Of a stretch of DNA of 64,000 nt, positions 1-64,000 are shown in pieces. The stretch lies in the sequence record NC_027399.1, one strand, 5' to 3'. The notes under the pieces were generated by a model, which made no database searches, was not told the DNA's origin, and saw nothing but the letters and a program-made list of their open reading frames with translations. Numbering within the stretch: position 1 is the stretch's first letter; every line of letters starts with the position of its first letter. A program made the translations under genes and the position numbers.

Positions 1-2
1 AA

Positions 3-830
3 GAGATATTAAATTTTATAGAAAATCTTGGTATTGAATGTGTAACGAATACACGCTCTGTTTTAAAAAGTACTATGGAATTGGATATTTTTATACCTGA
101 CTTGAATGTTGCAATAGAAATTAATGGTATGTACTGGCATAGTACTGAATACAAAGAACGACTGTATCATCAAAACAAAATGTTGGAATGTAAAGAACAT
201 GGCATTCACTTAATACAGATATGGGAAGATGAATGGAATACCAAACAAGATTTGGTTAAATTTCGTTTGATGAATGTATTAAAATGCTCCAGTACTATAT
301 ATGCAAGAAAATGTAAAATAAAAGAAATCAATAAAAAAGAATGTGATAATTTTATTAATACATACCATATCCAAGGTTCTAGTTCATCATCTATTAGAAT
401 TGGTTTATATTACGAAAATGAATTATATGCAGTTATGACATTTGGAAAATCCAGATTTGATAAAACTGTTCAGTATGAATTGATACGATATTGTTCAAAA
501 AGTACAGTCGTTGGCGGTGCATCTAAATTATTAAAGTACTTTGAGAAGAAATACAAACCAGTGTCGTTGATTTCTTATGCAGATGCGTGTTGGAGTACTG
601 GTGATTTATATATTAAACTTGGTTTTACATATAATGGATTAACTGAACCTGGTTATTTTTATTACAAATCAAGTACTGGTAGAATTTCAAGGCATCAATG
701 TCAAAAGAAAAAACTAGTCAATCAGGGATATGATGAAAATTTATCAGAATATCAAATATGTACCACTGTACTTAAATATAACAAAATATTTGATTGTGGT
801 AATTTTAAATTCACTAAATATTACATATAA
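3..830 (+). CDS. Hef-like homing endonuclease (Vsr/DUF559-like nuclease + Mom-like GNAT domain), 5'-truncated by window edge
   Basis: Frame is open from base 3. LDIFIP..AIEINGMYWH..KMLEC..GIHLIQIWEDEW nuclease motif, followed by IYARKC..YAD..WSTG.LY.KLGF GNAT/Mom-like domain. Paralog of 18992..20701. Confidence 0.7.
   Translation, partial: EILNFIENLGIECVTNTRSVLKSTMELDIFIPDLNVAIEINGMYWHSTEYKERLYHQNKMLECKEHGIHLIQIWEDEWNTKQDLVKFRLMNVLKCSSTIYARKCKIKEINKKECDNFINTYHIQGSSSSSIRIGLYYENELYAVMTFGKSRFDKTVQYELIRYCSKSTVVGGASKLLKYFEKKYKPVSLISYADACWSTGDLYIKLGFTYNGLTEPGYFYYKSSTGRISRHQCQKKKLVNQGYDENLSEYQICTTVLKYNKIFDCGNFKFTKYYI
815..820 (+). promoter_or_regulatory. late promoter-like TAAATA
   Basis: TAAATA ~30 nt upstream of the 850 ORF; the same motif precedes other structural-looking genes. 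Confidence 0.45.
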
Positions 831-849
831 CTTATAAGGAATATATAAA

Positions 850-1473
850 ATGTCTGACATTAAAAAAATCATGGAAGCTGAAAATCGTGTAGAAGCACTG
901 AAGTTCATGCAGATTAATGAAAGTAATATTGAAAAACTGGAAGTGGTTCTCGCAATCAAATCTGGTATTGCCGATAAACTACAACGTGCTTCTGAGCAGT
1001 TGATGAACTACAGCGTTGACGTTCTCGGTCCAATTGTTGATCGTATTAAAGCAGAAGAAGGTATTGAAGTGGCCGAAGAATTTCAGTCCAGAGTTAAAAA
1101 CATCCTTCAACATGCAGCAGATGTAGTTATGGATGCTAAAGACCAGATCACTAACGAAACTCTTAAACTTACTGGTGATGTAGCTGATAATCCAGATGTG
1201 GCTGATATCGGTATTGATGATGATCTAACCGTTGATGAGGAAACCCCAACTTTTGATATGGAATCTGATGCTTCCTTTGATGATATTGAAGAACCTGTAC
1301 CGGAAGATCGTGCAATGAAAGAATCTGTACAATATACCCAAGTTGGTATCAAAATGGAAAGTACTAAAGGTACTATTGGTACAAAATATTTCAGTACTCA
1401 TAAAGAAGCTGAAAAATGGCTCAAAGAAAATGAATCTAAAGTCAAAAAAGTACTTGGGTTCGAGAAAAAATAA
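850..1473 (+). CDS. acidic late protein, probable virion/head-associated
   Basis: 207-aa ORF with a D/E-rich linker, downstream of TAAATA. Confidence 0.5.
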   Translation: MSDIKKIMEAENRVEALKFMQINESNIEKLEVVLAIKSGIADKLQRASEQLMNYSVDVLGPIVDRIKAEEGIEVAEEFQSRVKNILQHAADVVMDAKDQITNETLKLTGDVADNPDVADIGIDDDLTVDEETPTFDMESDASFDDIEEPVPEDRAMKESVQYTQVGIKMESTKGTIGTKYFSTHKEAEKWLKENESKVKKVLGFEKK

Positions 1474-1481
1474 GGTTAATT

Positions 1482-1832
1482 ATGAAATTTCGTGATATTG
1501 TAAAAATCACAGAAGATGCACCACCAAAAGATATTCGCAATATGATCACCAGTATTGCATTATCACTAGTTGCATCTGGTAGGGAAGAGGTTGGTATTCA
1601 GTCATTGGTTAATGAAATTAAGAAAAGGACTGGTATTGATGTTCCTTATAATGTGATGATGGATATTTTAAATTCGTTGCCATTTGTTCAGGATGCAAAT
1701 TCTGATAGAGTACAATTTTCAGGAACTGATACCAGTACTGACTTTAAGCAACCTAATTCAGAAGAAAGTTCTGAACAAAAAGTACAAGATATGGCTGGTA
1801 AAGCAGCCACCGACAGTATGAAATCACTATAA
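1482..1832 (+). CDS. hypothetical protein, possible internal head protein
   Basis: 116-aa ORF; N-terminus MKFRDIVKITE resembles T4-type capsid-targeting leaders. Confidence 0.5.
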   Translation: MKFRDIVKITEDAPPKDIRNMITSIALSLVASGREEVGIQSLVNEIKKRTGIDVPYNVMMDILNSLPFVQDANSDRVQFSGTDTSTDFKQPNSEESSEQKVQDMAGKAATDSMKSL

Positions 1833-1837
1833 AATTT

Positions 1838-1867
1838 TTGAACAAAAAGACAAAAATAAGCTATAAT
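1838..1867 (+). promoter_or_regulatory. sigma70-type early promoter
   Basis: TTGAAC-18-TATAAT. Confidence 0.6.
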
Positions 1868-1884
1868 TATGGAGTAACAAGGGA

Positions 1885-2592
1885 ATGTTTGTTCCACCTA
1901 TTATTAGCAGATATTCTTATGTTGATTATAAAAGAATTGAAGGCGGCTCTCAGGGTCGCCTTTATTCTACCCCAACCGGAAATCTGCCATCGGTAACTAC
2001 AATTCTAAGTGCCACATCCAATGATGAAGGATTGAAAAAATGGCGTGAATTTGTGGGAGAAGAAAAAGCCAATGCTATCACACTGGAAGCAACGACAATT
2101 GGTACCTTTATGCATGAAAATTTAGAAAATAGATTAAATTCTAAGCCAGATCATGAAGGTGGTATGCCAGTACGTGTATTAGCAAGAAAAATGGCTGATA
2201 AAATTCAAGAAGAAGCGTGGCCTAAAATTAATGAAGTATGGGGTCAGGAAGTACCACTGTACTATGAAGGTCTATGGGCTGGAACAACAGATTTGGTTGG
2301 AATTCATGACGGAATTCCAACCATCATGGATTACAAAAATTCTAGAAAAAAGAAAACATGGAATCATATTGAAAATTACCGTTTACAAATTGCCGCATAT
2401 GCGTTGGCTCATAACTATATGTATGGAACTGATATACGACGTGGTGTAATATTTGTTTGTGTAAGAGAAGATCCTCAAAATTTACAATATCAGGAATTTA
2501 TAATTGAAGGTGATGATTTTGATGAAGCCGTACAAATGTGGATTTCTAGAGTAGAGCAATATTATATAATGAATGGGCAAATTATAAATTAA
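1885..2592 (+). CDS. PD-(D/E)XK RecB-family exonuclease
   Basis: PSVTTIL, GT.MH, AGTTDL..IMDYK, YRLQIAAYALA motifs. Confidence 0.85.
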   Translation: MFVPPIISRYSYVDYKRIEGGSQGRLYSTPTGNLPSVTTILSATSNDEGLKKWREFVGEEKANAITLEATTIGTFMHENLENRLNSKPDHEGGMPVRVLARKMADKIQEEAWPKINEVWGQEVPLYYEGLWAGTTDLVGIHDGIPTIMDYKNSRKKKTWNHIENYRLQIAAYALAHNYMYGTDIRRGVIFVCVREDPQNLQYQEFIIEGDDFDEAVQMWISRVEQYYIMNGQIIN

Positions 2593-2612
2593 ATTAGCAA
2601 ACTGGAGTAACA

Positions 2613-3149
2613 ATGAAAGACAACGTATACATTTATATTATTAAAGTACTGGAAGGTAAAGGTTACAATATCAATGAAGTAATCAAGAAAAGCGATAAAG
2701 AAATCAAATCTCTTCCTCTATCTCGTCAGATTATTGAGGGTATTATTTCTTATAAAGAAAAAGGTTCCCCAAAACTAGAAGAAATCGAAAAGAAAATCTT
2801 TGATAAGAGATATAACCCAGACGTGGAAGTAAAAACTTCAGATATTATCGAATATGTAAAAAACACCGATGAACAAAATGAAGTCCTGGATAATATTAAA
2901 CAAGAACAACTTGAAGAAATTCCTGATGATGTAATTGTAATTAAACATACTGCTCCTAACAAAGAAGATTTGGATATCATCAAAGATGCCCTTCAACAAA
3001 AAGAACTCCGTACAATTGCAAAATATGTTAAACACCTGAAAGACACCGTTCCTTCTGCTATTATGTCTGCTGTTGATAGTGTGACTATTAATGACCTAAT
3101 TAATGCACGAATTGCAGAAGTAAAATCAGCAGAAGAAAAAACTAAATAA
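2613..3149 (+). CDS. hypothetical protein
   Basis: 178-aa ORF with GGAG RBS. Confidence 0.7.
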   Translation: MKDNVYIYIIKVLEGKGYNINEVIKKSDKEIKSLPLSRQIIEGIISYKEKGSPKLEEIEKKIFDKRYNPDVEVKTSDIIEYVKNTDEQNEVLDNIKQEQLEEIPDDVIVIKHTAPNKEDLDIIKDALQQKELRTIAKYVKHLKDTVPSAIMSAVDSVTINDLINARIAEVKSAEEKTK

Positions 3150-3180
3150 TCCTATAACGAACTTTGATTAAGGGTTTAAT

Positions 3181-3756
3181 ATGGCTCAACAACAAATCGC
3201 TTTACAACAAATCAGAACAGGTAAACAGCGTGATTTACCGGATGCGTTGGAAAAAGGACAACTAGGATTCAGTACTGACGTAGGTCGTATGTTCGTTGGT
3301 TTACCATCCTCATCTGATCCTGCAAGTTTAGTAGCAGGTCGTAATTGGGACAATGCACCAAATAGTGGGAAAGAAAATGTAGAAATTATTACGGAGTTTA
3401 CACCATGGCAGGTTGTTTCTAATATTGTAAACCGACCGTATGTATTCTCTGTACCGAAGGGTGGCAGTACGCAAATTTCAATTCAAAGTGATAATAGAGT
3501 GTTTCTTGATTATATGGCATATAACGATACTTCCAGTATTCTGGAAAGTGGTAATGTACAAATGTTGTGTAATGATTCAAAAACACTACTGGCACAATTT
3601 AATAATACAACTCAAGAAGAGGGTATCATTTCATTGACTTTCTCGGATGCAACATTCGATGAAAGTACTAAATTGATGGTATTCACTATCACTAATAATG
3701 ACACGGAAAGTGATTATAGTATAGAATTCGTATATAGAGGCTGGGATAAACCGTAA
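3181..3756 (+). CDS. virion structural protein with Mtd_N-like N-terminus
   Basis: IQ.R.G...LP..L..G.LG...D..RMFVG pattern typical of tail/baseplate N-terminal domains. Confidence 0.6.
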   Translation: MAQQQIALQQIRTGKQRDLPDALEKGQLGFSTDVGRMFVGLPSSSDPASLVAGRNWDNAPNSGKENVEIITEFTPWQVVSNIVNRPYVFSVPKGGSTQISIQSDNRVFLDYMAYNDTSSILESGNVQMLCNDSKTLLAQFNNTTQEEGIISLTFSDATFDESTKLMVFTITNNDTESDYSIEFVYRGWDKP

Positions 3757-3775
3757 AAGGCTCCCAGCCTTTTTA
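3757..3775 (+). terminator. rho-independent terminator
   Basis: AAGGCT-CCC-AGCCTT followed by T tract. Confidence 0.6.
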
Positions 3776-3824
3776 TCCCCTAAAATAATTAAAAACAATA
3801 AAAAAAAACTTAAAAGGATGTAAA

Positions 3825-6140
3825 ATGATTAACGTTATTAAACGTGATGGATCAAAAGAACCACTCGACCTTGATAAAATTCACCAGATTTTATTTTTTG
3901 CATGTGAAGGTATTTCTGGTGTGTCTGTGTCCGAAATTGAAATTCGTGCTAAATTGCAATTTCATGAAGGAATTAAAACTTCTGTAATTCATGATATCCT
4001 AATTAAAAGTTCATCAGAGCTTATTTCTGAAGATACTCCAAATTATCAATACGTAGCTGGTCGTCTTTTGAATTATAGTATTCGTAAAGAAGTTTATGGT
4101 CAGTATGAACCAATTCCTTACGGAGAATATGTAAATAACATGGTTCAAAAAGGTATATACGATCCTATCATTCTGGAAAAATATAATTCAGCAGAAATCG
4201 AAGAACTCGGGAAATGCATTAAACACAAACGTGATGATAAATTTACTTTTGTTGCAATGAGTCAATGGCAAGGTAAGTATCTGTGTAAAAACCGTGTAAC
4301 TAAAGAAATTTATGAAACACCACAAATGGCTTATATGACTATCGCTGCTACGATTTTCTCTGAATACAGTACTGAAATTCGTTTGTCATATGTTAAGAAG
4401 TTCTATGATGCTATTAGTACTTTTGATATTAGTTTACCAACTCCGATTATGTCCGGTCTTCGCACTAATACACGTCAGTTCTCAAGTTGTGTAGTACTGA
4501 ATGTTGGCGATAGTCTTGATAGTATTGGTTCCAGTAATCATGCAATCCTGCGTTATATTTCACGTAAAGCAGGGCTTGGTGTTAATATGGGACGTATTCG
4601 TGCAATTGATTCTGCAATTCGTGATGGCGATGCAGTACATACTGGTGTAGTACCATTCTTATCTGCATTAGCAAAAACTGTCAAAAGCTGTTCCCAGGGA
4701 GGTGTAAGAGGCGGGGCAGCAACCGTACATTTTCCAATGTGGCATTTGGAATTTGAAAATATTGTAGTACTGAAAAATAATAAAGGAACTGAATTTAACC
4801 GAGTAAGACAACTGGACTATTGCTTCCAAATCAATAAGACATTATATCAACGATTGATTGATGGAAAAGACATTACATTCTTTAGCCCACATGATGTTCC
4901 TGATCTATATGATGCATTTTGTGCTGATCAAGAAGAATTTGAACGTCTGTATATTAAGTATGAACTCGATGAAACTATTCGTAGGAAAACTATGCCAGCG
5001 ATTGAAGCATTTAGTCATCTAATACAAGAGCGTGCAGAAACTGGCCGCATTTATATTCAGAATATTGATAATGCCAATGAGCATGGTTCATTTATTCCAG
5101 AAATTGCACCAATTGAGCAAAGTAATTTGTGTCAGGAAATTGATTTACCATCTGTTCCATTTGAAGATATTAATAATGGTGAAGGTCTTATTAGCCTATG
5201 TACTTTGAGTGCTATTAACTGGGGTAATTTTGACAAACCCGAAGATATGGAAGAAGCGTGTGATTTGGCTGTCCGTGCCCTGGATGCTATTCTTGATTAT
5301 CAGGATTATCCAGTACTACATGCTGAACGAGCTACAAAGCTCTACAGACCACTTGGTGTTGGTATTATGAGCCTAGCCTATTTCCTGGCTAAACGTGGCT
5401 TAAAATACGATACAAACGCATTGAGCACTATTAACGAATGGTCAGAAGCGTGGTCTTATTATTTGATTAAAGCATCCGTAAACCTTGCAAAAGAAAAAGG
5501 GCATTGTGATGGATTTAAGAATACTAAGTACTCACTGGGTTTATTCCCACATGACACTTATAAATCAGATTCATATATCAATGAAATTGCACCATATGAA
5601 TTAAAACAAGATTGGGATTCCCTACGTGAAGAAATGATGGTGTATGGTATTCGTAATGCTACATTACATGCAAATATGCCAGGAGAAACATCATCACAAA
5701 TCAGTAATAGTACTGCTGGTATTGAAAAGATTCGTTCTCTTGTAACAGTAAAAACTTCTAAAGATGGTGTTCTTAAACAAGTTGTACCTGAAATTTCAAA
5801 ATTAAAGAACAAATATGACCTACTATGGGAACAATCTGATAATATTGGTTATCTTCAGGTGTGCGGCGTTATGCAGAAATACATGGATCAAGGTATAAGT
5901 ACTAATACGAGTTATAATCCTGAAAAGTTCCAAGATGGAAAAGTGCCAATGTCAGTACTGTTAACAGAACTTCTAATGGCTTATAAACTTAACACAAAAC
6001 AACTATACTATCATAACGTGTTGGACAATGCTTCTGAAGTTGATATTGACAAATATATGGAAGAAAAAAATAAATTAACAAAAAATGATATTGTTTTGCC
6101 TGAGCTACCAGAAGATGATTGTGAGAGTTGTAAATTGTAA
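3825..6140 (+). CDS. nrdA: class Ia ribonucleotide reductase alpha subunit
   Basis: ATP cone VIKRDG, PTPIMSG, RQFSSC, SQGGVRGGA, QSNLCQEI, C-terminal CESC. Confidence 0.97.
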   Translation: MINVIKRDGSKEPLDLDKIHQILFFACEGISGVSVSEIEIRAKLQFHEGIKTSVIHDILIKSSSELISEDTPNYQYVAGRLLNYSIRKEVYGQYEPIPYGEYVNNMVQKGIYDPIILEKYNSAEIEELGKCIKHKRDDKFTFVAMSQWQGKYLCKNRVTKEIYETPQMAYMTIAATIFSEYSTEIRLSYVKKFYDAISTFDISLPTPIMSGLRTNTRQFSSCVVLNVGDSLDSIGSSNHAILRYISRKAGLGVNMGRIRAIDSAIRDGDAVHTGVVPFLSALAKTVKSCSQGGVRGGAATVHFPMWHLEFENIVVLKNNKGTEFNRVRQLDYCFQINKTLYQRLIDGKDITFFSPHDVPDLYDAFCADQEEFERLYIKYELDETIRRKTMPAIEAFSHLIQERAETGRIYIQNIDNANEHGSFIPEIAPIEQSNLCQEIDLPSVPFEDINNGEGLISLCTLSAINWGNFDKPEDMEEACDLAVRALDAILDYQDYPVLHAERATKLYRPLGVGIMSLAYFLAKRGLKYDTNALSTINEWSEAWSYYLIKASVNLAKEKGHCDGFKNTKYSLGLFPHDTYKSDSYINEIAPYELKQDWDSLREEMMVYGIRNATLHANMPGETSSQISNSTAGIEKIRSLVTVKTSKDGVLKQVVPEISKLKNKYDLLWEQSDNIGYLQVCGVMQKYMDQGISTNTSYNPEKFQDGKVPMSVLLTELLMAYKLNTKQLYYHNVLDNASEVDIDKYMEEKNKLTKNDIVLPELPEDDCESCKL

Positions 6141-7415: not shown

Positions 7416-7422
7416 AATACAA

Positions 7423-7455
7423 AATTCAGTACTTAATCAGTACTGAATTTTTTTA
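7423..7455 (+). terminator. rho-independent terminator built on two AGTACT sites
   Basis: AAATTCAGTACT-TAATC-AGTACTGAATTT plus T tract. Confidence 0.65.
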
Positions 7456-7468
7456 TAAGGTATAAATT

Positions 7469-10942: not shown

Positions 10943-11459
10943 AATTATTTTATGTACAGATAAAAATTACGGTATAGGATATAAAAATACAATTCCGTGG
11001 CATAGCAGTGAAGATTTTAAACACTTCAAAGAAGAAACTTTGAATAAAACTGTTGTGATGGGATATAATACATGGAAATCCCTACCAAATAAACCACTTT
11101 CAAAAAGACTTAATATTGTGCTTGTTAATCGTGCATATGAAGATCGTGATATGTATGATCAAACCAACGTCTTATTTCTGGATGAAGATAATTTAGAAAG
11201 TATTATTCGTAATAACCCTGATTGTGTTATTATTGGCGGTGCATCAATTTATAAAATGAGTTTGCCTCATGTAGATGAAATCGTACATAGTATAATTCCC
11301 AAAGAATTTGTATGTGATTGCTTTTTTGACTTCACTATTGATAAGCGTGTGATTATTGAACGTGAAAGTTGTAAAACACTTGATGATGGTATTATGGTGG
11401 ATTATTATAAATGCAAACCAAATCCAGATTATGATGATTACGTGGATTCATATCAATGA
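10935..11459 (+). CDS. folA: dihydrofolate reductase
   Basis: GIG.KNTIPWH..EDFKHFK..T..K.VVMG..TW.SLP.KPL..R.NIVL, IIGGASIY; start moved to ATG 10935 after GGAG. Confidence 0.95.
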   Translation: MAKIILCTDKNYGIGYKNTIPWHSSEDFKHFKEETLNKTVVMGYNTWKSLPNKPLSKRLNIVLVNRAYEDRDMYDQTNVLFLDEDNLESIIRNNPDCVIIGGASIYKMSLPHVDEIVHSIIPKEFVCDCFFDFTIDKRVIIERESCKTLDDGIMVDYYKCKPNPDYDDYVDSYQ

Positions 11460-12040
11460 AGATAAAGGATATGGAAGTTCATTTATGTGAGCGTGGTGAA
11501 ATTTCTTCATTCATTGAAGAACATCATTATTCTAAAAATATTAATGGTTGTATAACTGATTATTGTTTCAAATTAACATATAATAATGAAATAATTGGTG
11601 CTATGTTTTATGGAAAAATGGCTATGGCTAACCAATACAAAAGATTTGTTGATAGAGAAGAAGATTGTATTGAGTTGCGTAGATTATGCTGTATTGATGA
11701 TACACCAAAAAACACTGAAAGTTTTTTTATTGGTAAAACACTAAAATGGCTTAAAAAGAACACACAAATAAAGGTGGTTGTTAGTTATGCAGATCAAGAA
11801 TATGGTCATAGTGGTATAATTTATAAAGCATCTAATTTTGAATATAATGGATTTAAAAAAGGTGCTAAAGTTATAATCCACAATGGCAAACAATATCATG
11901 ATAAAGCTATTAGAACTAAGTATAAAGGGAAGTTAAAACCATTTGCACAAAGATTAAAAGATGCATTAGACAGTGGTGATGCTTATTATAAACAAACTGC
12001 TGGAAAACATACTTACACTTACAAGTTAAGGAAAACTTAG
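11456..12040 (+). CDS. Mom-family (GNAT) DNA modification protein
   Basis: HHYS, IELRRL..DDTPKNTESFFIG, VVSYAD..GHSGIIYKASNF.Y.G signature of Mom-like proteins. Confidence 0.75.
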   Translation: MKIKDMEVHLCERGEISSFIEEHHYSKNINGCITDYCFKLTYNNEIIGAMFYGKMAMANQYKRFVDREEDCIELRRLCCIDDTPKNTESFFIGKTLKWLKKNTQIKVVVSYADQEYGHSGIIYKASNFEYNGFKKGAKVIIHNGKQYHDKAIRTKYKGKLKPFAQRLKDALDSGDAYYKQTAGKHTYTYKLRKT

Positions 12041-17020: not shown

Positions 17021-18988
17021 ATGGCTAAGAAACAAGAAAGTTCAGTACTTCAAGAACATGATGTACAACGCCTTAATGATTATCAACATGCTCGTCTACG
17101 CAGTGAAATGTACTTAGGATCAAGAAGTATCCATGAAAGCCAAGTTCTCATTTTTGGGGAAAATTCATACCAAGTTACTAACATGGAATGGGTGCCTGCA
17201 TTACTTACTGCATGTCGTGAATTATGGGATAATTCACTTGATGAGTTTAAAAAAGCCGGTACTAAAGAACCGGTACTTAAAATTGAATTTGATGAAAATG
17301 AATTAACATTCAGTTGTATTGATAATGGACGCGGTATTCCGATTGATTATGTTCCAGATTTCAATACTAATCTCTGTACTATGGTAATGACTGAAACAAA
17401 GACTGGTAGAAACTTTGATGATTCAAAGCGTGATGAAACTATTGGTCAAAATGGTCTGGGTGGATCTGTGGCAATGCTTGTAAGTTCTAAAGCTGAAATG
17501 GAAATACATCGAAAAGGTCGTCCATATAAAACATCAGCGTCCAATGATTCATATGATGGATTTTATAAATTCAGTCAAAATTTTAAAGAAGGAACTGAAT
17601 TTATTCCAGAAATTCAAATTTCTGAACCAGTAATTAGAAAAATTAGTTCTGATAAAACAGGAACAAGTATTAGACTAACATTTAGTCCTTCTGTATTTCC
17701 TAACAGAAAATTACCAATTGAACTGTTGTATAGCATTCTTAAAGAAATGGCATCAGCAAATCCAACATATAAAATCTTTTTGAATAATAAACGAATTAAT
17801 GTTAAACCAACTCCAGAAAAAACATTATTTAATGCATCTAAACTAATGCAACTAAATGTTAACGATGAATCTTTTAACTTTAACAGTACTTTTTATATTA
17901 TTCCAAATGCTGTTAATAATATGAATACTAATTTTCATATGCATGGTTTAGTTAATAATGCACCAGCGTTCGATGGTGGTACTCATCTAGATACATTCAA
18001 GAAACATTTTTCACTTGGTATTGCTAATGCTCTTGAAAAAGAAGCGAAGAAGCGTAAGATGAAGCCAAACCGTTCAGATATTGAAGAAGGGCTTCTGATT
18101 TATAATGTAACTACAATGAAAGCACCTTCATTCAATTCACAAATTAAATCCAAATTAACTAACGAAAATGTAGTTAAACCAATTCAACAAGCAATGAGTA
18201 CTGAATGGTTCGAAGAATTAGTTAAAAAGAATAAAGATTGGGTTGATGAAATATTTGAACGTTGTGCTGCACGTACAAATAAAAAAGATGCAGAAGAAGA
18301 TCGTCGTCTTGCTAAAAAACTTCTTAAAGGTAAAGTTGCCAAACTACTTGATTCAGTTGGTACTGATCGTTCCAAATGTATTCTAATGTTGGCAGAAGGT
18401 GATTCTGCTATTTCTAACATGGCTAGTGCTCGTGATCCTAATATTCATGGTATCTTACCTTTACGTGGTAAAATTATGAATGTGAGTGGTGAAGAGAAAA
18501 CAAAAGAATTAATGGATTCTGATGCATTACATGATATCATGGCTAGTATTAACCTAGTTCCAGGTGTGAAGGCAAATCGTGATGAATTGAGTTTTGGTAA
18601 ATTATACATAGCAACGGATGAAGATACTGACGGCCTTAATATAGCCGCATTGATTTGTAATTTTCTTTATAAATTCTGGCCTGAACTATTTCAGGATGCC
18701 GATAATCCATTTGTGTATGTATTCAAAACTCCATTTATTATTCTGGAGAAAGGGAAAGAATCAAAATACTTCTATGGTTATAATGTTTCTGAATACAATC
18801 CTGAAGATTGGAAGGGTTGGAAAGCCACACGTGCAAAAGGATTAGGAACATTGGAAAAGAGTAATTTCAGAGACGCATTCACCAATAGTGTAGCGGTTGC
18901 AATTACCGATGATGGTAATTTAGGTGAAACACTGGATTTGATATTCAATAAAAAGAGAGCAGATGATCGTAAAGCATGGATGGCTTAG
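17021..18988 (+). CDS. 39: DNA topoisomerase II large subunit (T4 gp39+gp60 fused, GyrB-like)
   Basis: HARLRSEMYLGS, ELWDNSLDE, DNGRGIP, GQNGLGGS, LAEGDSA, PLRGKIMN, ATDEDTDG, RAKGLG; start moved to ATG 17021. Confidence 0.95.
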   Translation: MAKKQESSVLQEHDVQRLNDYQHARLRSEMYLGSRSIHESQVLIFGENSYQVTNMEWVPALLTACRELWDNSLDEFKKAGTKEPVLKIEFDENELTFSCIDNGRGIPIDYVPDFNTNLCTMVMTETKTGRNFDDSKRDETIGQNGLGGSVAMLVSSKAEMEIHRKGRPYKTSASNDSYDGFYKFSQNFKEGTEFIPEIQISEPVIRKISSDKTGTSIRLTFSPSVFPNRKLPIELLYSILKEMASANPTYKIFLNNKRINVKPTPEKTLFNASKLMQLNVNDESFNFNSTFYIIPNAVNNMNTNFHMHGLVNNAPAFDGGTHLDTFKKHFSLGIANALEKEAKKRKMKPNRSDIEEGLLIYNVTTMKAPSFNSQIKSKLTNENVVKPIQQAMSTEWFEELVKKNKDWVDEIFERCAARTNKKDAEEDRRLAKKLLKGKVAKLLDSVGTDRSKCILMLAEGDSAISNMASARDPNIHGILPLRGKIMNVSGEEKTKELMDSDALHDIMASINLVPGVKANRDELSFGKLYIATDEDTDGLNIAALICNFLYKFWPELFQDADNPFVYVFKTPFIILEKGKESKYFYGYNVSEYNPEDWKGWKATRAKGLGTLEKSNFRDAFTNSVAVAITDDGNLGETLDLIFNKKRADDRKAWMA

Positions 18989-18991
18989 GAT

Positions 18992-20701: not shown

Positions 20702-20716
20702 CAAAGAGGCAATGGA

Positions 20717-30095: not shown

Positions 30096-30124
30096 TTGAC
30101 AAATCATTTCAAAAGAGTTATAGT
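30096..30124 (+). promoter_or_regulatory. sigma70 promoter
   Basis: TTGACA-17-TATAGT. Confidence 0.7.
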
Positions 30125-30162
30125 ACTGAAAATGTTTAATTGAATAGGACGGATAAACCCAA

Positions 30163-53140: not shown

Positions 53141-53228
53141 GGCCGTATGTCCAAATTGGTAAAGGAGACAGACTTAAAATCTGTTGGTGATATTCACCTT
53201 CTCGATTCGAGTTCGAGTGCGGCTACCA
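53141..53228 (+). tRNA. tRNA-Leu(TAA)
   Basis: acceptor GGCCGTA/TGCGGCT, anticodon arm ACAGA-CTTAAAA-TCTGT, long variable arm, T arm CTCGA-TTCGAGT-TCGAG, encoded CCA. Confidence 0.93.
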
Positions 53229-53257
53229 AATTTATAGTACTTCATTAGGTAAACAAT

Positions 53258-53581
53258 ATGTGTACTGAAGCAAGAAGATATGTTTATATTTTGGTTCGCA
53301 AAGATTTAGAACTAAAGGATATTATTGTTCAAACTGCTCATGCTTCATATGAAAGTGCAAAAGAATTTAAAAATAATGCTGATAGAACATCTATTATAGT
53401 TTTAGAAGTCAAGGACTTATACAAACTAAATGATGCTAAAAGTTATTTAAATTCTAATGGCATTAATTGGACTGTGTATACTGAAAAATCTTTAGGATTT
53501 GGAGAAACTGCTATCAGTACTGAAGCACTCAATAACGAACAACGAAAAATTATGCGTAAGTTCCAATTATTGAAAATATAA
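53258..53581 (+). CDS. PTH2-like protein (second, divergent class)
   Basis: YVYILVRKDL....VQTAHA, IIVLEV, F.E...TAI...L..R..L.LL. Confidence 0.7.
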   Translation: MCTEARRYVYILVRKDLELKDIIVQTAHASYESAKEFKNNADRTSIIVLEVKDLYKLNDAKSYLNSNGINWTVYTEKSLGFGETAISTEALNNEQRKIMRKFQLLKI

Positions 53582-53594
53582 ATATAATAACAAA

Positions 53595-53670
<76 letters not shown>

Positions 53671-53675
53671 AATTC

Positions 53676-53772
53676 AACAGGTAGTAACGCTCTTAGGTGT
53701 ACATTAATATAGGAATAAGGGTTAACAGTACTGTACACAAACGAGTAACCCCGAAAGACCCGAAACCTGTTA
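53676..53772 (+). ncRNA. small RNA B (7-bp closing stem, possible pseudoknot)
   Basis: AACAGGT/ACCTGTT+A; GTGTACA/TGTACAC hairpin; loop GGGTTA can pair with downstream TAACCC. Confidence 0.55.
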
Positions 53773-53781
53773 AAGTTTTAC

Positions 53782-53832
53782 GGATGATTATAAATCTGAA
53801 TTGACAGAAACAGCTAAAACTGTTATTATCCT
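53782..53832 (+). ncRNA. 50-nt tRNA-like mini RNA, copy 1
   Basis: GGATGAT/ATTATCC, TCTG/CAGA, AACAG/CTGTT; covaries with copies 2 and 3. Confidence 0.75.
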
Positions 53833-53839
53833 ATTTTAT

Positions 53840-54024
53840 TCCACAATCAGACGTATATGGTGTAAGTTACGTCGATGAAATCCAGAACAAGATCTCTGGT
53901 ACTCTAGGAAGTGGTGAATGTTAACCTAGACGGGTTTGTTAATTGGACGATAAGCAATTAATACTTGACTAGCAGGTTTAAACTAGAGGTGACTGTCCTT
54001 CACTAAACTGGAAAACCGGGTGGA
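53840..54024 (+). ncRNA. small RNA D (~185 nt, multi-hairpin)
   Basis: TCCAC/GTGGA closing stem; GACGT/ACGTC, CCAGA/TCTGG, CTAGG/CCTAG, TTAATTG/CAATTAA, CTAG/CTAG, GTGA/TCAC stems; no ORF. Confidence 0.55.
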
Positions 54025-54079
54025 CTTTTAATTAAAAAAGTGTTGAACAAAAAGTTCAATAATGATATAATAAGTACCA

Positions 54080-54155
54080 ATGTAAGGCGTGGAACAATGT
54101 TTACATAAGTTACTTAGTAGCCTGTACGCCCCACGTCAAGGTAGCCGAAAGGCAA
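54080..54155 (+). ncRNA. small RNA C
   Basis: starts right after promoter 54043-54071; GGCGT/ACGCC or CGTGG/CCACG stem; GCC-GAAA-GGC GNRA hairpin. Confidence 0.45.
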
Positions 54156-54162
54156 GTTTAAT

Positions 54163-54213
54163 GGGTGGTTATAAATCTGAATTGACAGAGACTATTAAAA
54201 CAGTCACCATCCA
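54163..54213 (+). ncRNA. 50-nt tRNA-like mini RNA, copy 2
   Basis: GGGTGGT/ACCATCC, TCTG/CAGA, GACT/AGTC, then A and AATTTTAATTT. Confidence 0.75.
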
Positions 54214-54235
54214 AATTTTAATTTAATAGTTTAGT

Positions 54236-54379
54236 ATGAATAAAAAACAGATACATAAACAATATGATGAAATTGCAGTGAAGGTTTTTCGTGGTGAATT
54301 AGGTTATAAACCATCTGTTAAATCTAAATATTCAAAATCTTCTTCACTAAAGTTCAATCATAAAATAGAGTTTAAATAA
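54236..54379 (+). CDS. small basic hypothetical protein (47 aa, not in ORF track)
   Basis: open frame MNKKQIHKQYDEIAVKVFRGELGY...; weak RBS. Confidence 0.35.
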   Translation: MNKKQIHKQYDEIAVKVFRGELGYKPSVKSKYSKSSSLKFNHKIEFK

Positions 54380-54398
54380 TACTGGACAATAATATATA

Positions 54399-54863
54399 AT
54401 GAATATCACTAATGTAAAAGATTTTTTAGAATATTTTATTAAGAATACTCGTGCACGTGATGAATTAGAAAAGAATGGATTCATCCAAGGTAACGATTAC
54501 AGTAATTTCTTTTATAGTATTGATAAACATGAATATTATGTCGATGCAACTTTAAGTGATAATCCATATTATATAAAAGATGGGTATTGCATTGGATTTA
54601 CGTTTGAAGATAAATCAGTAGATGCACCAATAAACTTTTATGCATTATATTATAATAAAAAAGATAATATTTTGAAATTAGGATTTACTAGTGACATGGA
54701 TGAAGATGTTGTATTCAATTGTAACACATGGTTGGAACATGATTCATTCTTTCAAAGTACATTAATTCATAACTTTATGACAACAGATTTAGAGTACTGG
54801 AAAAATTGCATAGAATTACTTAATGTAATTTATAATGAACAAATCAAACAAAAATGGCAATAA
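54399..54863 (+). CDS. FQxS-motif family protein
   Basis: WLEHDSFFQSTLIHNFMTTDLEYWKNC. Confidence 0.7.
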   Translation: MNITNVKDFLEYFIKNTRARDELEKNGFIQGNDYSNFFYSIDKHEYYVDATLSDNPYYIKDGYCIGFTFEDKSVDAPINFYALYYNKKDNILKLGFTSDMDEDVVFNCNTWLEHDSFFQSTLIHNFMTTDLEYWKNCIELLNVIYNEQIKQKWQ

Positions 54864-54960
54864 TAGCAGGACGGTTCAGTATTTGGTAGTATGTTTGGCT
54901 GAATAAACGTGTAAAAAAGTGTTGAACAAAAAGTTCAGTACTATATAATTGACTTACTAC

Positions 54961-55034
54961 GTCCCCTTAGTTCAGTTGGATAGAACAACTGCCTTCTAAG
55001 CAGTAGGTCACTGGTTCGAGTCCAGTAGGGGATA
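54961..55034 (+). tRNA. tRNA-Arg(TCT)
   Basis: GTCCCCT/AGGGGAT, D arm GTTC/GAAC, ACTGC-CTTCTAA-GCAGT, ACTGG-TTCGAGT-CCAGT; CCA lies 2 nt past the discriminator. Confidence 0.93.
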
Positions 55035-55047
55035 TACCATACAATAT

Positions 55048-55071
55048 GGGAATAGTTAGAAGATATTCCCA
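55048..55071 (+). other. acceptor-like microhelix
   Basis: GGGAATA-GTTAGAAGA-TATTCCC+A followed by the same ATTTTAATTT trailer as the RNA genes. Confidence 0.3.
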
Positions 55072-55181
55072 ATTTTAATTTAAAAAGCGTTGAACAAAAA
55101 GTTCAATAATGATATAATGGTATTATAAAATGTTGTAATACTTAATATTAACTTTTAAGAAGATAATTAGTATCATACACA

Positions 55182-55273
<92 letters not shown>

Positions 55274-55331
55274 TAAAATTCAATTAAAAAAGTGTTGAAC
55301 AAAAAGTTCAATGCTGATATAATAAAAGAAT

Positions 55332-55422
<91 letters not shown>

Positions 55423-55430
55423 GATTTTAT

Positions 55431-55481
55431 GGATAGTTATAAAGTTGAATTAACAGCGACACTTAAAATTGTCACTATCCA
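55431..55481 (+). ncRNA. 50-nt tRNA-like mini RNA, copy 3
   Basis: GGATAGT/ACTATCC, GTTG/CAGC, GACA/TGTC, then A and AATTTTAATTT. Confidence 0.75.
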
Positions 55482-55540
55482 AATTTTAATTTAAATAGTA
55501 CTTGACAAAAATGTTCAGTACTGATACAATAAAGAATATT

Positions 55541-55618
55541 GGCCCTTTACTCTCAAGTGGTTAGAGAATCCGACTCATAATCGGTAGGCTCTGAGTTCGA
55601 ATCTCAGAAGGGCCACCA
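55541..55618 (+). tRNA. tRNA-Ile2(CAT) (lysidine-type; Met less likely)
   Basis: GGCCCTT/AAGGGCC-A-CCA and GACTCATAATC arm closely resemble enterobacterial tRNA-Ile2; own promoter TTGACA-17-TACAAT. Confidence 0.88.
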
Positions 55619-55637
55619 AATTTTAAAACATAATATA

Positions 55638-56345
55638 ATGAAAATACAATTACAATATCCATATAATCAAGATTGGGATACAGGTTCATTAACAATTAAT
55701 CCCGAAGGTCGAAGAACTGTTATTTTATATAACAAAACTACAAAAATCACAAGTAGTACTGCTTATGCACGATATTTGTTAGCAGTGCACAATAACAGAT
55801 ATTTAACTGAAAATGAAGAAGCTGACCATATTGATGAAGATTTCACTAATGATGATATATCTAATCTTCAAATTTTGACAATAGAAGAACATAGAGCTAA
55901 ATCAATTGCGAATGGGATTCAAGCTAAATATGATGAATTTGTGTGTAAAGGTTGTGGAATAAAATTTTTAAGAAGACATAATCAAGTTAAGTCATATACA
56001 AAATATTGTAGTAAAAAATGTTCTTGGAAAAATAATCCTCCACCAACAAAAACAAAAAATGGTGACACGACAATCGATTATGATAAAGTAAAAGAATATA
56101 TAAACGATGGATTGTCAGATACTGAAATTGCAAAGAAAATGAATATAAATCGCAATTCAGTACTAAATTATAGAACTAAACACAATATACCTTCTAAAAA
56201 ATTTGCTAATGTGAATATTTTAGAAGATAATATTGATGAAATAAAACAACGTTTGCTTTCTGGTGAAAAGAAAGTTGATATATACAAAAGCTATGGTTCT
56301 TCAAAAAATGTTTTTGCAAGATTTTTAAAGAGACATGGATTATAA
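55638..56345 (+). mobile_element. HNH homing endonuclease in tRNA cluster
   Basis: EADHIDEDFTNDDISNLQILT..EH HNH motif, CxxC..CxxxC zinc finger, two C-terminal HTH-like segments. Confidence 0.8.
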
Positions 56346-56354
56346 TAGAATAAT

Positions 56355-56427
56355 GACTCTGTAGCACAATCGGTGGTGCGATTGACTGTTAATCAATTGG
56401 TTGGGGATTCGAGTTCCTCCAGAGTCG
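56355..56427 (+). tRNA. tRNA-Asn(GTT)
   Basis: GACTCTG/CAGAGTC, GCAC/GTGC D arm, ATTGA-CTGTTAA-TCAAT, G73, no encoded CCA. Confidence 0.9.
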
Positions 56428-56445
56428 CTTAACAAACCAAAGAAT

Positions 56446-56877: not shown

Positions 56878-56882
56878 ATTTT

Positions 56883-59702: not shown

Positions 59703-59709
59703 NNNNNNN
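59703..59709. other. assembly gap (7 N)
   Basis: nnnnnnn in sequence. Confidence 0.99.
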
Positions 59710-59711
59710 GA

Positions 59712-60806: not shown

Positions 60807-60822
60807 TCCAGGAGAAATATAT

Positions 60823-61161: not shown

Positions 61162-61170
61162 GGAAGTACA

Positions 61171-61998: not shown

Positions 61999-62018
61999 TG
62001 TATAAAATTTGATATAAT

Positions 62019-62048
62019 AAAAGCCTCCCTTCGTGGAGGCTTTTTTCG
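62019..62048 (+). terminator. rho-independent terminator
   Basis: AAAGCCTCC-CTTCGT-GGAGGCTTT plus T tract. Confidence 0.75.
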
Positions 62049-62072
62049 TTCTTTTTTAATTTAAATTGAGTC

Positions 62073-62101
62073 TTGACAAATAATACATTTTTATGTATAA
62101 T
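62073..62101 (+). promoter_or_regulatory. sigma70 promoter
   Basis: TTGACA-17-TATAAT perfect consensus. Confidence 0.8.
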
Positions 62102-62136
62102 AATCCTAATAATTAGAAAAGTATCAGGTGTGATTT

Positions 62137-62721
62137 ATGTTAAGTACTTTTAAGCGAGTTTATTTAAGAAACAACAAAATGCAAGTTCGTTTACACAAAG
62201 ACGAAGCTGATTCGTTTATGGCTAAAGCTATTGTTAAATCTGAATTGTACAAACGCCTTTCACCAAAAGAAAGCTCGCCATATGGATTTAATCACCCACA
62301 CAGCCATTATGTTGGATTGGTGTGTGAACACGCTGCTTATGTGTTGTTCACGGAACTGGAAGAAATGACTGGCATCAAATACGATATCGATCCAGCATTC
62401 CAGAATAGTAAAAGAGATGGTGAATGTGATTTAATTGTTAACAATCTACGTATAGAAGTGAAGGGTATTAAGTACAAATCATGGACTAATTATGGTCCGT
62501 GTATCAGTACAAGACAATTAAAGAATATTGAGAAAAAAGCAGATATCATTCTGTGGGTTTTGTATAATGAAAAACGTCATGAATTTTCGTTTGAAGGTTT
62601 TAATTATGTAAAAGATGTACATACTGTACCAGTTAAAATTACTGGTGCTAAAGGTAAACCACAAATTAAAAATCATCCAGTTATTGATATTATTAAACCA
62701 TTACAGGAATTACCAATATGA
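62137..62721 (+). CDS. restriction-endonuclease-like PD-(D/E)XK nuclease
   Basis: G..CE.A helix, CDL..N..IEVK, D..LW.L pattern. Confidence 0.6.
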   Translation: MLSTFKRVYLRNNKMQVRLHKDEADSFMAKAIVKSELYKRLSPKESSPYGFNHPHSHYVGLVCEHAAYVLFTELEEMTGIKYDIDPAFQNSKRDGECDLIVNNLRIEVKGIKYKSWTNYGPCISTRQLKNIEKKADIILWVLYNEKRHEFSFEGFNYVKDVHTVPVKITGAKGKPQIKNHPVIDIIKPLQELPI

Positions 62722-62975
62722 TCAAATGTAATATCGTAGTGTATAATTATGAGATTAATTCACGCGATGGAAGTGAAGAATTAGTGAATTCATATTTAGA
62801 ATATGTAGTTAATTTTCCAGTACTGCCAGCGATTGGTTCTGAATTGAAAATTTATACATACAATGAAAAAGTATATGTAGTACTGGATATTGAATACAGA
62901 ACACGTATTATGGACTGTCATAATGTTGACAATCCAAGTACTATGGAAATTAATATCATTGTTAAGGAAGTATAA
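62718..62975 (+). CDS. small hypothetical protein (paralog of next gene)
   Basis: PVLPAIGSELKI....Y.V.DIE motif. Confidence 0.6.
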   Translation: MIKCNIVVYNYEINSRDGSEELVNSYLEYVVNFPVLPAIGSELKIYTYNEKVYVVLDIEYRTRIMDCHNVDNPSTMEINIIVKEV

Positions 62976-63217
62976 TGAACCAACAATACATGATTAAAGT
63001 GGTTTTGTACAAAAATGATAATCAGAGAACTAAAATCTGTTCTTCTTATGTTCAGTCATTACCAAGAACCGGAGAACTTATTACAGTACTTAATGATAAA
63101 TTCATTGTTGAACAGATTGAACACACACTGTATCCAATTAGTACAACCGATACTGTTTCGTGGAATATGAATCAACATTCTGAATCTGGTATTGCTATTA
63201 TTTGTACAAAAACATAA
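62975..63217 (+). CDS. small hypothetical protein (paralog of previous gene)
   Basis: QSLPRTGELITV....F.V.QIE motif. Confidence 0.6.
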   Translation: MNQQYMIKVVLYKNDNQRTKICSSYVQSLPRTGELITVLNDKFIVEQIEHTLYPISTTDTVSWNMNQHSESGIAIICTKT

Positions 63218-63227
63218 GGTACCACAT

Positions 63228-63674
63228 ATGATGTATTTTATATTTCTGTACTTAATATGTCACCTTGTTATTGTTACTATTATGGACAGACATTCACACT
63301 TTGGATATAGTTATAAAGTTGCTAAGATTTATGGTTTTAAATCTTATTTTGTTGCACTATTTTATAGTTATATACTCGATCCAAAGTATATGATATTGTC
63401 TCTTATACTACAAAAAGAAGCAAACATTGATACTATTTCTAAAATAGAATTCGTATGTAGGCGATTTCTTAATTCAGATGATAAATGTTCAGTTAAATTT
63501 CATTCGGATAAAGTTATTTTTGTATATAACAATGTATTCACTTGTGGTATTGAATTAAATCAGGTATTAGGTATAGTTGATATTTCATGGAATCATAACG
63601 TCATTATGCATCCAAGAACTATCAAGCTAATAGAAGCATGTAAAATAAAAGTTGACAGCGACACAAAGAGATGA
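63228..63674 (+). CDS. membrane-associated hypothetical protein
   Basis: two hydrophobic segments; ATG 63228 after AAGG. Confidence 0.55.
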   Translation: MMYFIFLYLICHLVIVTIMDRHSHFGYSYKVAKIYGFKSYFVALFYSYILDPKYMILSLILQKEANIDTISKIEFVCRRFLNSDDKCSVKFHSDKVIFVYNNVFTCGIELNQVLGIVDISWNHNVIMHPRTIKLIEACKIKVDSDTKR

Positions 63675-63710
63675 TATTATATAGAATAAACACATATTAA
63701 AGAGGTGTAT

Positions 63711-64000
63711 ATGGATGCTTTAGCTACTCTATTCAAACTGAATACTTCAGAAAAAGAAGGTTATTTGAGTATCAGTGATCTTGAAAATACAAGTGAATAT
63801 ATTTTCAAAAATACAATCAAAATTAAAGCTAATAAGGATAAAAGCAATACACATTTCACAAAATGGATTGCTTATTGGGAGGGTGTTAATTTCGCAGTTG
63901 AAATGACAGTTCTACCAAAAGTATTAAGTACCGGATTTGTTAAAGTTGTTATTATTGATAAAAATCTTCGACCAATTTCAGAAATTGGTGAATACCCGGT
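63711..64000 (+). CDS. hypothetical protein, 3'-truncated by window edge
   Basis: GAGGTG RBS, MDALATLFKLN.. open to end of window. Confidence 0.65.
   Translation, partial: MDALATLFKLNTSEKEGYLSISDLENTSEYIFKNTIKIKANKDKSNTHFTKWIAYWEGVNFAVEMTVLPKVLSTGFVKVVIIDKNLRPISEIGEYP

Follow-up and report, generated by a model that had tools for sequence, protein, structure and literature searches.

The palindrome AGTACT is strongly over-represented in RaK2-like jumbo phages and is placed at fixed positions in predicted promoters of their terminal-repeat region

Phages are expected to lose short palindromes, yet one such word, AGTACT (the ScaI site), occurs 157 times in a 64,000-nucleotide stretch of DNA from a phage of Klebsiella, and the question raised by this locus is what could favor so many copies. 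The stretch, hereafter called the window, is identical to bases 124001 to 188000 of Klebsiella phage K64-1 (NC_027399.1 / AB897757.1), an Alcyoneusvirus and RaK2-like jumbo myovirus of 346.6 kb. Its genes serve replication and nucleotide metabolism or encode many small virion proteins, a C5 methyltransferase, and a Mom-family protein, and a cluster of tRNA genes and numerous small open reading frames (ORFs) are also present. A first-pass annotation of the window had counted 22 AGTACT sites by hand in bases 1 to 6000 and had proposed an enrichment of about 10-fold. The count is exact, all coordinates that it listed hold the word, and the sites are distributed over the window as follows.

Positions 1 to 64,000: 157 dispersed AGTACT sites with a mean spacing of 404 bp (2.4 per kb in coding sequence and 3.0 per kb in intergenic DNA).

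The enrichment is confirmed under simple null models. Base composition predicts 21.2 sites in the window (a 7.4-fold excess), a first-order Markov model predicts 13.5, and shuffles that preserve dinucleotides yield 13.42 ± 3.56, with none of 100 reaching 157 (an 11.7-fold excess). The excess also survives models in which codons are preserved, as the first-pass annotation had asked to be examined. Shuffling synonymous codons while keeping protein sequence and codon usage gives 35 to 40 sites, compared with the 138 observed in coding sequence (z 15–19), and even a very conservative dicodon shuffle gives 75 to 95 (z 8–11). A maximal-order Markov model, with an expectation of 140, is uninformative because the pentamers on which it draws are themselves enriched through AGTACT. 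If other hexamers were equally enriched, then AGTACT would not stand out, but it is the strongest outlier of all 4096 under the codon model, followed by CAGTAC and GTACTG. Among 6-bp palindromes it alone exceeds 2.1-fold, and about thirty others are absent from the window. The excess extends to the flanks, with 32 copies of CAGTACTG where 0.5 is expected, and the preferred extended form in the window is (T)nC-AGTACT-Gn(A).

The claim that the enrichment is genome-wide was evaluated with OU509535.1, an unannotated genome 99% identical to K64-1 that served as its proxy. This sequence contains 945 AGTACT sites compared with 117 expected (8.1-fold), each 10-kb bin is enriched, and the 760 coding sites exceed the 240 of the codon shuffle by a z score of 40. 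Thus, the claim holds for this close relative, whereas for K64-1 itself it is established within the window. AGTACT is likewise the top-ranking hexamer in seven relatives, which include representatives of Asterius-, Mimas-, and Eneladusvirus, Salmonella phage Munch, and Xanthomonas phage XbC2, and the excess amounts to 5- to 8-fold in at least five genera. Counts for individual phages are as follows.

PBECO4: AGTACT observed 86, expected 16.
EC22.5-2, first stretch: observed 245, expected 17.
EC22.5-2, second stretch: observed 135, expected 17.
GAP32: observed 104, expected 14.
CBB: observed 67, expected 8.8.
Serratia phage BF: observed 67, expected 9.0.
Salmonella phage Munch: observed 86, expected 14.
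Xanthomonas phage XbC2: observed 62, expected 8.7.

No enrichment is found in the syntenic stretch of a distant relative, Vibrio phage 2.275.O (13 sites compared with 13.6 expected, hexamer rank 1956). The unrelated coliphage alia has none where 8.4 are expected, and a 50-kb sample of Escherichia coli K-12 has 11 compared with 12.6 expected. Because the relatives are enriched and these three sequences are not, the trait is a character derived within the enterobacterial RaK2-like clade. Site density is 2.5 sites per kb in the phage compared with 0.22 per kb in the E. coli sample, and CAGTACTG occurs 246 times in the phage genome (3 expected) but not at all in that sample. The fact that the trait is kept in a member that infects Xanthomonas, yet is absent from the syntenic Vibrio relative, favors a clade-specific reader of the word over a general host factor. 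We found no earlier report of AGTACT enrichment in these phages in the searchable literature.

Selection appears to act on the DNA rather than on the encoded protein, as had been proposed from the window alone. All three reading frames are indeed used, with 70 sites read as AGT-ACT, 52 as xxA-GTA-CTx, and 14 as xAG-TAC-Txx, in addition to 19 intergenic sites; in OU509535.1 the three frames account for 424, 257, and 79 sites. Outside a terminal-repeat region of higher density that is described below, coding and noncoding densities are similar (2.38 and 2.62 per kb), and sites have a flat distribution around the starts and stops of genes, with no positional preference. Moreover, the word has left an imprint on proteins. 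Ser-Thr dipeptides are 1.4- to 1.76-fold enriched in the enriched phages (with the exception of Munch, at 0.97) and Val-Leu dipeptides are 1.25- to 1.53-fold enriched, whereas the reverse dipeptides Thr-Ser and Leu-Val remain near 1. About half of the Ser-Thr pairs are encoded as AGT-ACT, and neither the Vibrio relative nor alia exhibits the Ser-Thr or Val-Leu excess. The DNA word has therefore altered phage proteins, and the shuffles together with the asymmetry between each dipeptide and its reverse rule out a codon or protein artifact.

The bases that flank the hexamer exhibit the same two-fold symmetry as the hexamer itself. C is enriched 3.0-fold at position −1 and G 2.8-fold at +1, while G is reduced to 0.45 at −1 and C to 0.37 at +1; farther out, the preferences are for T at −3 and for A at +8. 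Although 464 of 514 genes lie on one strand, left-flank log-enrichments and those of the reverse-complemented right flank correlate with r = 0.92. In Mimas- and Eneladusvirus, A/T is favored besides C/G, and all enriched phages compared disfavor G at −1 and C at +1. For words of the type xGTACy, the ratio to codon shuffles rises from 0.71 when neither flanking base is correct to 1.32 when one is and to 3.13 when both are, whereas inner one-mismatch variants are not enriched (ratio of about 1). Half-sites are thus graded and roughly additive, the pattern that a symmetric dimer on double-stranded DNA would impose, and which amounts to weight-matrix behavior rather than all-or-none recognition of a hexamer. 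The same symmetry argues against an early suggestion that AGTACT is a Chi-like recombination signal, as Chi and KOPS are asymmetric words with a strand bias relative to replication or to the direction of DNA ends, and no orientation can be conveyed by a word that is palindromic along with its flanks.

Individual sites turn over while their density is maintained. In codon-aligned orthologues, 11 to 27% of K64-1 sites are common to other genera, which is 2 to 2.6 times the rate of 179 composition-matched hexamers, although these figures are somewhat inflated by independent re-creation of sites. By relative, the values are 27% compared with 12.7% (p = 7e-4), 21% with 7.9%, and 21% with 8.3%, and the effect is weaker in CBB and not significant in BF; the other p values are 4e-3, 2e-3, and 0.03. 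Between genomes that have diverged by 1.2%, 6 substitutions fall within sites where 10.5 are expected, with 6 losses and 4 gains of sites. Outside regions of unusually high or low density, sites are spaced more evenly than random placement at the same local density would produce (coefficient of variation 0.895 compared with 1.014 ± 0.039), and 5.5% of gaps are shorter than 40 bp compared with 9.0 ± 1.1% for random placement. Such evenness fits diminishing returns from neighboring sites. Short-range periodicity is absent, except for the 20-bp promoter pairs and a 10-bp array noted below. One group of genes departs from this pattern.

OU509535.1, 133 to 142 kb (L008:33270-41699): tail-spike/depolymerase genes with beta-helix and Peptidase_S74 domains, 42 to 43% GC, low in AGTACT (about 1 site per 3 kb, near chance).

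The RaK2 authors call the tail-spike genes podovirus-related (PMC3622015). Taken together, these patterns point to weak selection on density, with positions free to turn over, that acts slowly on any resident DNA.

AGTACT is most dense in one region of the genome. A 20-kb segment of OU509535.1 (30.0 to 50.3 kb) holds 158 sites, a tripling of density; it is 36% GC and carries small ORFs only, and its counterpart in K64-1 begins at about 217 kb and reaches at least 243 kb. The terminal repeat of phage CBB has been determined experimentally as 22,456 bp, and its AGTACT density is 6.4 per kb compared with 2.5 per kb in two sampled distant stretches (228 to 254 kb and 326 to 336 kb). At its physical left end, CBB has an initial 1.5 kb that is mostly noncoding and full of AGTACT, and four further sites lie no more than 120 bp before the start of the repeat. 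In K64-1-type genomes, the edge of this hot region carries a tandem array of six copies of ATTCAGTACT with a 10-bp period.

Within this region, AGTACT is placed at promoters with base-level precision. The test of where the word falls was not circular, with only the two hexamers used to predict sigma-70-like promoters. Among the 21 best plus-strand promoters in OU509535.1 30 to 50 kb, 19 have an AGTACT in the spacer that ends 1 to 3 bases before the −10 element, and in 7 of the 21 a second AGTACT, exactly 20 bp upstream, ends on the first T of TTGACA. With a looser promoter definition, the spacer site is present in 24 of 35 promoters inside the hot region of OU509535.1 compared with 3 of 112 elsewhere. 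The equivalent region of the E. coli phage EC22.5-2 has the same architecture (18 of 26 promoters with the spacer site), and 9 of 24 promoters in the CBB terminal repeat carry the site, in the form AAAGTACT-TTGACA-N10-AGTACT-T-TATAAT. The palindrome therefore occupies fixed positions at the −35 and −10 elements of promoters in three genera and, judged by sequence, its layout in the hot region is that of an operator. A factor bound there would compete with sigma-70, because the sites share bases with the −35 element and with the TG of the extended −10 element.

An exact-pattern scan of IMG/VR recovered the double-site promoter in RaK2, 121Q, Serratia phage BF, Yersinia phage fHe-Yen9-04, and three uncultivated jumbo contigs, in which local AGTACT enrichment reaches 17- to 23-fold. 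Matches in unrelated contigs of 44 to 47% GC were set aside, as they comprise one homologous family and singletons, about what chance would provide for 17 fixed bases. That family consists of one contig (L025:6829-6890) and seven homologous IMG/VR contigs of 44 to 47% GC without AGTACT excess, with the arrangement AGTACT-TTGAC-N10-AGTACT. In L025, the contig whose ORFs were examined, it sits upstream of a YqaJ-like exonuclease gene. Although within chance, the family could hint at a known family of regulators.

Corresponding elements exist in the window. The first-pass annotation had placed AGTACT in promoters at 54937 and 55497 and in a terminator near 7423, and each of these is confirmed, with an additional promoter site at 55517.

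54922 to 54949, plus strand: predicted sigma-70-type promoter TTGAAC-16-TATAAT upstream of the tRNA-Arg gene, with AGTACT at 54937-54942 in the spacer, 1 nt before the −10 element.
55497 to 55530 (hexamers 55502-55530), plus strand: predicted sigma-70-type promoter TTGACA-17-TACAAT with TG, upstream of the tRNA-Met gene.
30096 to 30127, plus strand: promoter-like sequence TTGACA-17-TATAGT upstream of gp213, as read from the letters, with AGTACT at 30122 overlapping the last three bases of the −10 element.
7421 to 7457, plus strand: intrinsic terminator that follows the gene for the beta subunit of ribonucleotide reductase, with AGTACT at 7428 and 7439 in its arms.

The two sites of the tRNA-Met promoter lie exactly 20 bp apart; the last base of the one at 55497 is the first T of the −35 element, and the one at 55517 provides the T of the extended −10 TG, an architecture that matches the terminal-repeat promoters. 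The arms that contain the two sites of the terminator form its 13-bp stem, which is followed by a U-run and encloses a 5-nt loop (−13.6 kcal/mol, z −4.8). The suggestion that AGTACT also occurs in noncoding RNAs was not upheld, since Rfam and ARAGORN searches give only seven tRNAs in the window, none with a site. These form a cluster at 53141-56428 (Leu, Gly, Arg, two Ser, Met, and Asn), several of whose genes have TTGAAC/TTGACA-17-TATAAT-type promoters upstream. The adjacent 51.6 to 53.1 kb of the window are without a credible ORF and may encode RNAs that are absent from Rfam.

How might one word serve both at promoters and throughout a genome? The reading that we prefer, although at somewhat less than an even chance, is that AGTACT is the recognition site of a clade-specific, two-fold symmetric reader of double-stranded DNA, acting both as an operator at pre-early promoters and as a genome-wide mark. 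The sequences themselves show the enrichment, its symmetry, its restriction to the clade, the turnover of sites at steady density, and their constant position in promoters; from these we infer that a protein binds AGTACT, that this protein is of phage origin, and what its binding does. The reader, specific to the enterobacterial RaK2-like clade and with an optimum site near TnCAGTACTGnA, would most likely be a phage-encoded dimeric DNA-binding protein. Sites in the terminal-repeat/pre-early region of about 20 kb would act as operators, one abutting or overlapping the −35 element and the other lying in the spacer and touching the −10 or extended −10 element, such that the bound reader would compete with sigma-70 and switch pre-early transcription. 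Elsewhere, about 900 sites would each be under weak selection, which would hold density near one per 400 bp. Because this density is about 12 times that of the host, the reader would coat or mark phage rather than host DNA. The findings are compatible with an initial proposal that AGTACT is bound by a DNA-coating or packaging protein, a proposal that comes close to this explanation.

A more specific version, which we consider possible but hold with less confidence, is that a (C)AGTACT(G) reader tells phage from host by density, and thereby times pre-early transcription and directs a genome-wide activity to phage DNA only. That activity could be coating, protection, replication, or packaging, with no need for modified bases, and the density contrast available to the reader would be about 12-fold if it read the hexamer and much greater if it read the octamer. 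If true, such a phage-identity word would be the viral counterpart of uptake sequences and of the cyanobacterial palindrome HIP1.

Several points weigh against a phage-encoded reader of this kind. The constraint on single sites is weak, as the substitutions between the genomes 1.2% diverged indicate (6 compared with 10.5), and the horizontally acquired tail-spike genes, which have no excess, are evidently functional. Promoters published for CBB are mostly without AGTACT. Six to eight defined bases are few for a typical helix-turn-helix (HTH) dimer and are instead typical of restriction-modification enzymes. Furthermore, the candidates examined (a Cro-type regulator, an H-NS-like protein, and an 89-aa protein) did not establish a reader, and Pfam and PHROG scans of 24 candidate proteins revealed no DNA-binding domain. 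The Cro-type HTH regulator of CBB (HTH_37) was rejected, as the K64-1-type genome encodes no homologue of it. So was a pre-early protein of 166 aa (L006:35725-36225, equivalent to K64-1 230004-230501 and annotated as 'DNA-binding protein'), which combines the N-terminal oligomerization domain of H-NS (PF22470, 27.2 bits) with a C-terminal portion loosely similar to the DNA-binding motif of H-NS, but which is confined to phages of Klebsiella, Escherichia, and Salmonella.

The 89-aa pre-early protein (phrog_14550) is a lead, not a finding. Its 70 records match the enriched clade genus for genus and do not include the Vibrio phage, its gene lies 2 to 3 kb from the left end in CBB and in Yersinia and Erwinia phages, and it is unusually well conserved between Alcyoneus- and Asteriusvirus, at 75% compared with a mean of 58% for proteins of the window. 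It has no recognizable fold or family annotation (AlphaFold pLDDT 61, no Foldseek match), and many clade-specific genes would share its phyletic pattern. Two further observations were made in the same region. Several Fur-box-like copies (gagaatgataatgattctcatt) occur in the noncoding start of the terminal-repeat region of OU509535.1 (L006:31020-31600), some of them directly upstream of AGTACT. Also, a pre-early protein of 82 aa (L006:46449-46697) has a ParE-like toxin domain (PF24732, E 2.4e-10) and is conserved in the E. coli relative.

A different class of explanation was raised by the first-pass annotation, which named two enzymes encoded in the window as a possible cause.

42664 to 43557, plus strand: C5 cytosine methyltransferase gp237 (Pfam PF00145), rejected as part of the feature.
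11456 to 12040, plus strand: Mom-family gene gp190 (Pfam PF25680), rejected as part of the feature.

Neither family tracks the trait. The first protein is 100% identical to RaK2 gp194, and the RaK2 C5 methyltransferase is reported to make m5CpG (PMC3622015), a dinucleotide that AGTACT lacks; moreover, a homologue is present in alia, which has no AGTACT. The place of the Mom-like gene is taken by an RNase H gene in PBECO4, GAP32, and Munch, where AGTACT is enriched to the same degree. OU509535.1 has a CpG observed/expected ratio of 0.75, with TG at 1.29 and CA at 1.17, which fits the m5CpG methylation reported for RaK2.

Four other explanations are possible and are weighed here in the order of an enzyme target, a signal for DNA transactions, a host factor, and a neutral drive. 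AGTACT could be the target of some other phage enzyme with restriction-modification-like specificity (a methyltransferase, base modifier, or nickase), where the density of modified or nicked sites matters, for example in timing promoters by methylation, in supplying nicks at which clamps load or recombination starts, or in self marking. Such an enzyme would suit a sharply bounded 6-bp core that is also the ScaI site. It would also suit the resistance of RaK2 DNA to most restriction enzymes and the presence in these phages of several methyltransferases, including a Dam-family adenine methylase (PF05869), and because an unrelated coliphage avoids AGTACT, the enriched phages would need protection from ScaI-type enzymes. 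We nonetheless consider this explanation unlikely. The sole reported modification is m5CpG, a modification site needs no enrichment, the graded flanks and additive half-sites are unlike all-or-none recognition, and the neighbors that deamination would produce are not depleted (AGTATT 0.96, AATACT 0.82). We judge it no more probable that AGTACT is a signal for replication, recombination, or packaging, such as a site preferred for priming or for loading a helicase, a recombination hotspot at which terminal repeats join into concatemers, or a motif bound by terminase; a palindrome would serve both strands and both directions. Here the uniform density regardless of coding status, the spacing slightly more even than random, the turnover at maintained density, and the density peak in the terminal repeat, with clusters and arrays beside the physical end, are all as expected. 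However, a signal of this type does not explain why sites fall, to the exact base, at the −35 and −10 elements of promoters in the pre-early region, the Vibrio relative has syntenic replication genes and is not enriched, and tail-spike genes are replicated and packaged even with about 1 site per 3 kb. In addition, no primase or Chi system is known to use a 6- to 8-bp palindrome.

We regard the remaining two explanations as still less probable. If the word were read by a host protein, then the nucleoid-occlusion factor SlmA would be the leading candidate, although another enterobacterial regulator could be involved. The core of the SlmA site (GTGAGTACTCAC) in E. coli is identical to AGTACT, and its 12-bp palindromes are read by a dimer (PMC3020112); the trait is also confined to phages of Enterobacterales and close relatives. 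Yet SlmA requires G, T, A, and G at positions 1, 2, 4, and 5 of each half-site and a purine at position 3 (PMC3020112), whereas at position 3 the phage prefers C (3.0-fold) and depletes G (0.45-fold), which is the opposite flank preference, and the 347 kb contain no full SlmA site and two degenerate ones. Vibrio has SlmA too (PMC5519180), but the Vibrio phage lacks the enrichment; XbC2, which is reported on Xanthomonas, has it, and another coliphage avoids the word. SlmA is excluded by its published base requirements, and a host reader in general is very doubtful. Scarcely better placed is a functionless excess from clade-specific biased mutation, repair, or gene conversion, comparable to the very-short-patch repair that enriches CCWGG in E. 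coli. Weak constraint on single sites, the lack of conservation at most site positions, and recently acquired tail-spike genes that have not gained the excess, as slow amelioration predicts, are all consistent with such a drive. A drive should deplete the words that it converts, but all 18 one-mismatch neighbors of AGTACT lie within the normal range (0.62 to 1.58). The excess has altered amino acids, and the promoter placement is exact and conserved across genera. Conservation about two-fold above composition-matched controls, under-dispersed spacing, and promoter placement would not result from a drive, and a pure repair drive therefore fits poorly.

Other features of the window and of OU509535.1 were noted in passing. 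The gene at window positions 3 to 830 (gp173, truncated by the window start) is annotated as a homing endonuclease, carries 6 AGTACT sites in 830 bp, and has weak, sub-threshold Pfam matches to REase_MTES_1575, a PvuRts1I-like N domain, and a Mom-family domain. The type II topoisomerase genes (17021-22123) are split by a gene for a 570-aa 'hef-like' homing endonuclease (18992-20701), which is missing in PBECO4, GAP32, Munch, CBB, BF, and the Vibrio phage, and in which AGTACT density is still normal (5 sites). A run of seven N at 59703-59709 is also present in the deposited K64-1 record. The words TAAATA and TATTTA are depleted in genes (16 compared with 61 in the window; 95 compared with 293 and 101 compared with 266 in OU509535.1), which fits avoidance of spurious T4-type late promoters (TATAAATA), a promoter type that the CBB paper predicts for this phage group. 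AAAAAA is depleted as well (141 compared with 248).

The phenomenon is of broader interest because more than 70 sequenced jumbo phages of this clade, including several candidates for phage therapy against Klebsiella and E. coli, have accumulated about 900 copies of one palindrome. Its cost is visible in the clade's own proteins, which implies a strong and unstudied pressure. In practice, AGTACT provides a one-line diagnostic for the clade, a marker of recently acquired genes (such as tail spikes without the word), and a means to locate terminal repeats in assemblies, and the promoter-embedded pairs offer a directly testable handle on the reader.

How does AGTACT compare with known systems? Restriction-site avoidance concerns the same class of word but has the opposite sign, as AGTACT exhibits an 8-fold excess rather than depletion. 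The contrast that the first-pass annotation drew with the usual behavior of phages is real, since CTGCAG and CAGCTG are depleted in the same genome and AGTACT is avoided in alia. Relative to codon shuffles of OU509535.1, CTGCAG occurs 0 times compared with 58, CAGCTG 0 compared with 48, ACTAGT 29 compared with 103, and CGTACG 0 compared with 13; in the window, CTTAAG is absent where 21 are expected. Proteins p6 of phi29 and TF1 of SPO1 bind phage DNA genome-wide and repress early promoters, and the early promoters of SPO1 are clustered in its terminal redundancy. By analogy, their mode of action is the model that we propose for the AGTACT reader, although p6 recognizes bendability and TF1 recognizes hydroxymethyluracil DNA, whereas the specificity of the AGTACT reader would lie in a sequence word; no homologue of p6 or TF1 emerged, although no search was aimed at them. 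The uptake sequences DUS of Neisseria and USS of Haemophilus are self words that occur about once per kb within genes, leave a peptide imprint, often form terminators as inverted pairs, and allow a dedicated protein to tell own from foreign DNA. However, these are asymmetric 9- to 12-mers that serve natural transformation, whereas AGTACT is a palindrome in a lytic phage whose reader is a proposal.

The nearest known phenomenon is HIP1 (GCGATCGC) of cyanobacteria. Both words are short palindromes that are hyper-abundant across a clade and occur in all reading frames and between genes, and both are conserved above control motifs, which for HIP1 has been interpreted as selection rather than biased repair (PMC5861425, PMC4390886). 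As described above for AGTACT, the phage word is the top outlier over codon and Markov models, is found in all frames and in noncoding DNA, and is shared by a clade. The two differ in that the HIP1 excess is 15- to 300-fold and cellular, whereas that of AGTACT is 8-fold for the hexamer and viral. HIP1 is associated with cognate orphan methyltransferases, whereas AGTACT has no apparent cognate among the enzymes considered here, the C5 enzyme being reported as CpG-specific and its family not tracking the trait. HIP1 also exhibits a periodicity of 10 to 90 kb, while the spacing of AGTACT was analyzed at short range. Conversely, AGTACT has a defined position in promoters and a tripled density in the terminal repeat, which HIP1 does not. 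This small lytic system could therefore illuminate the 30-year-old question of what HIP1-like palindromes do.

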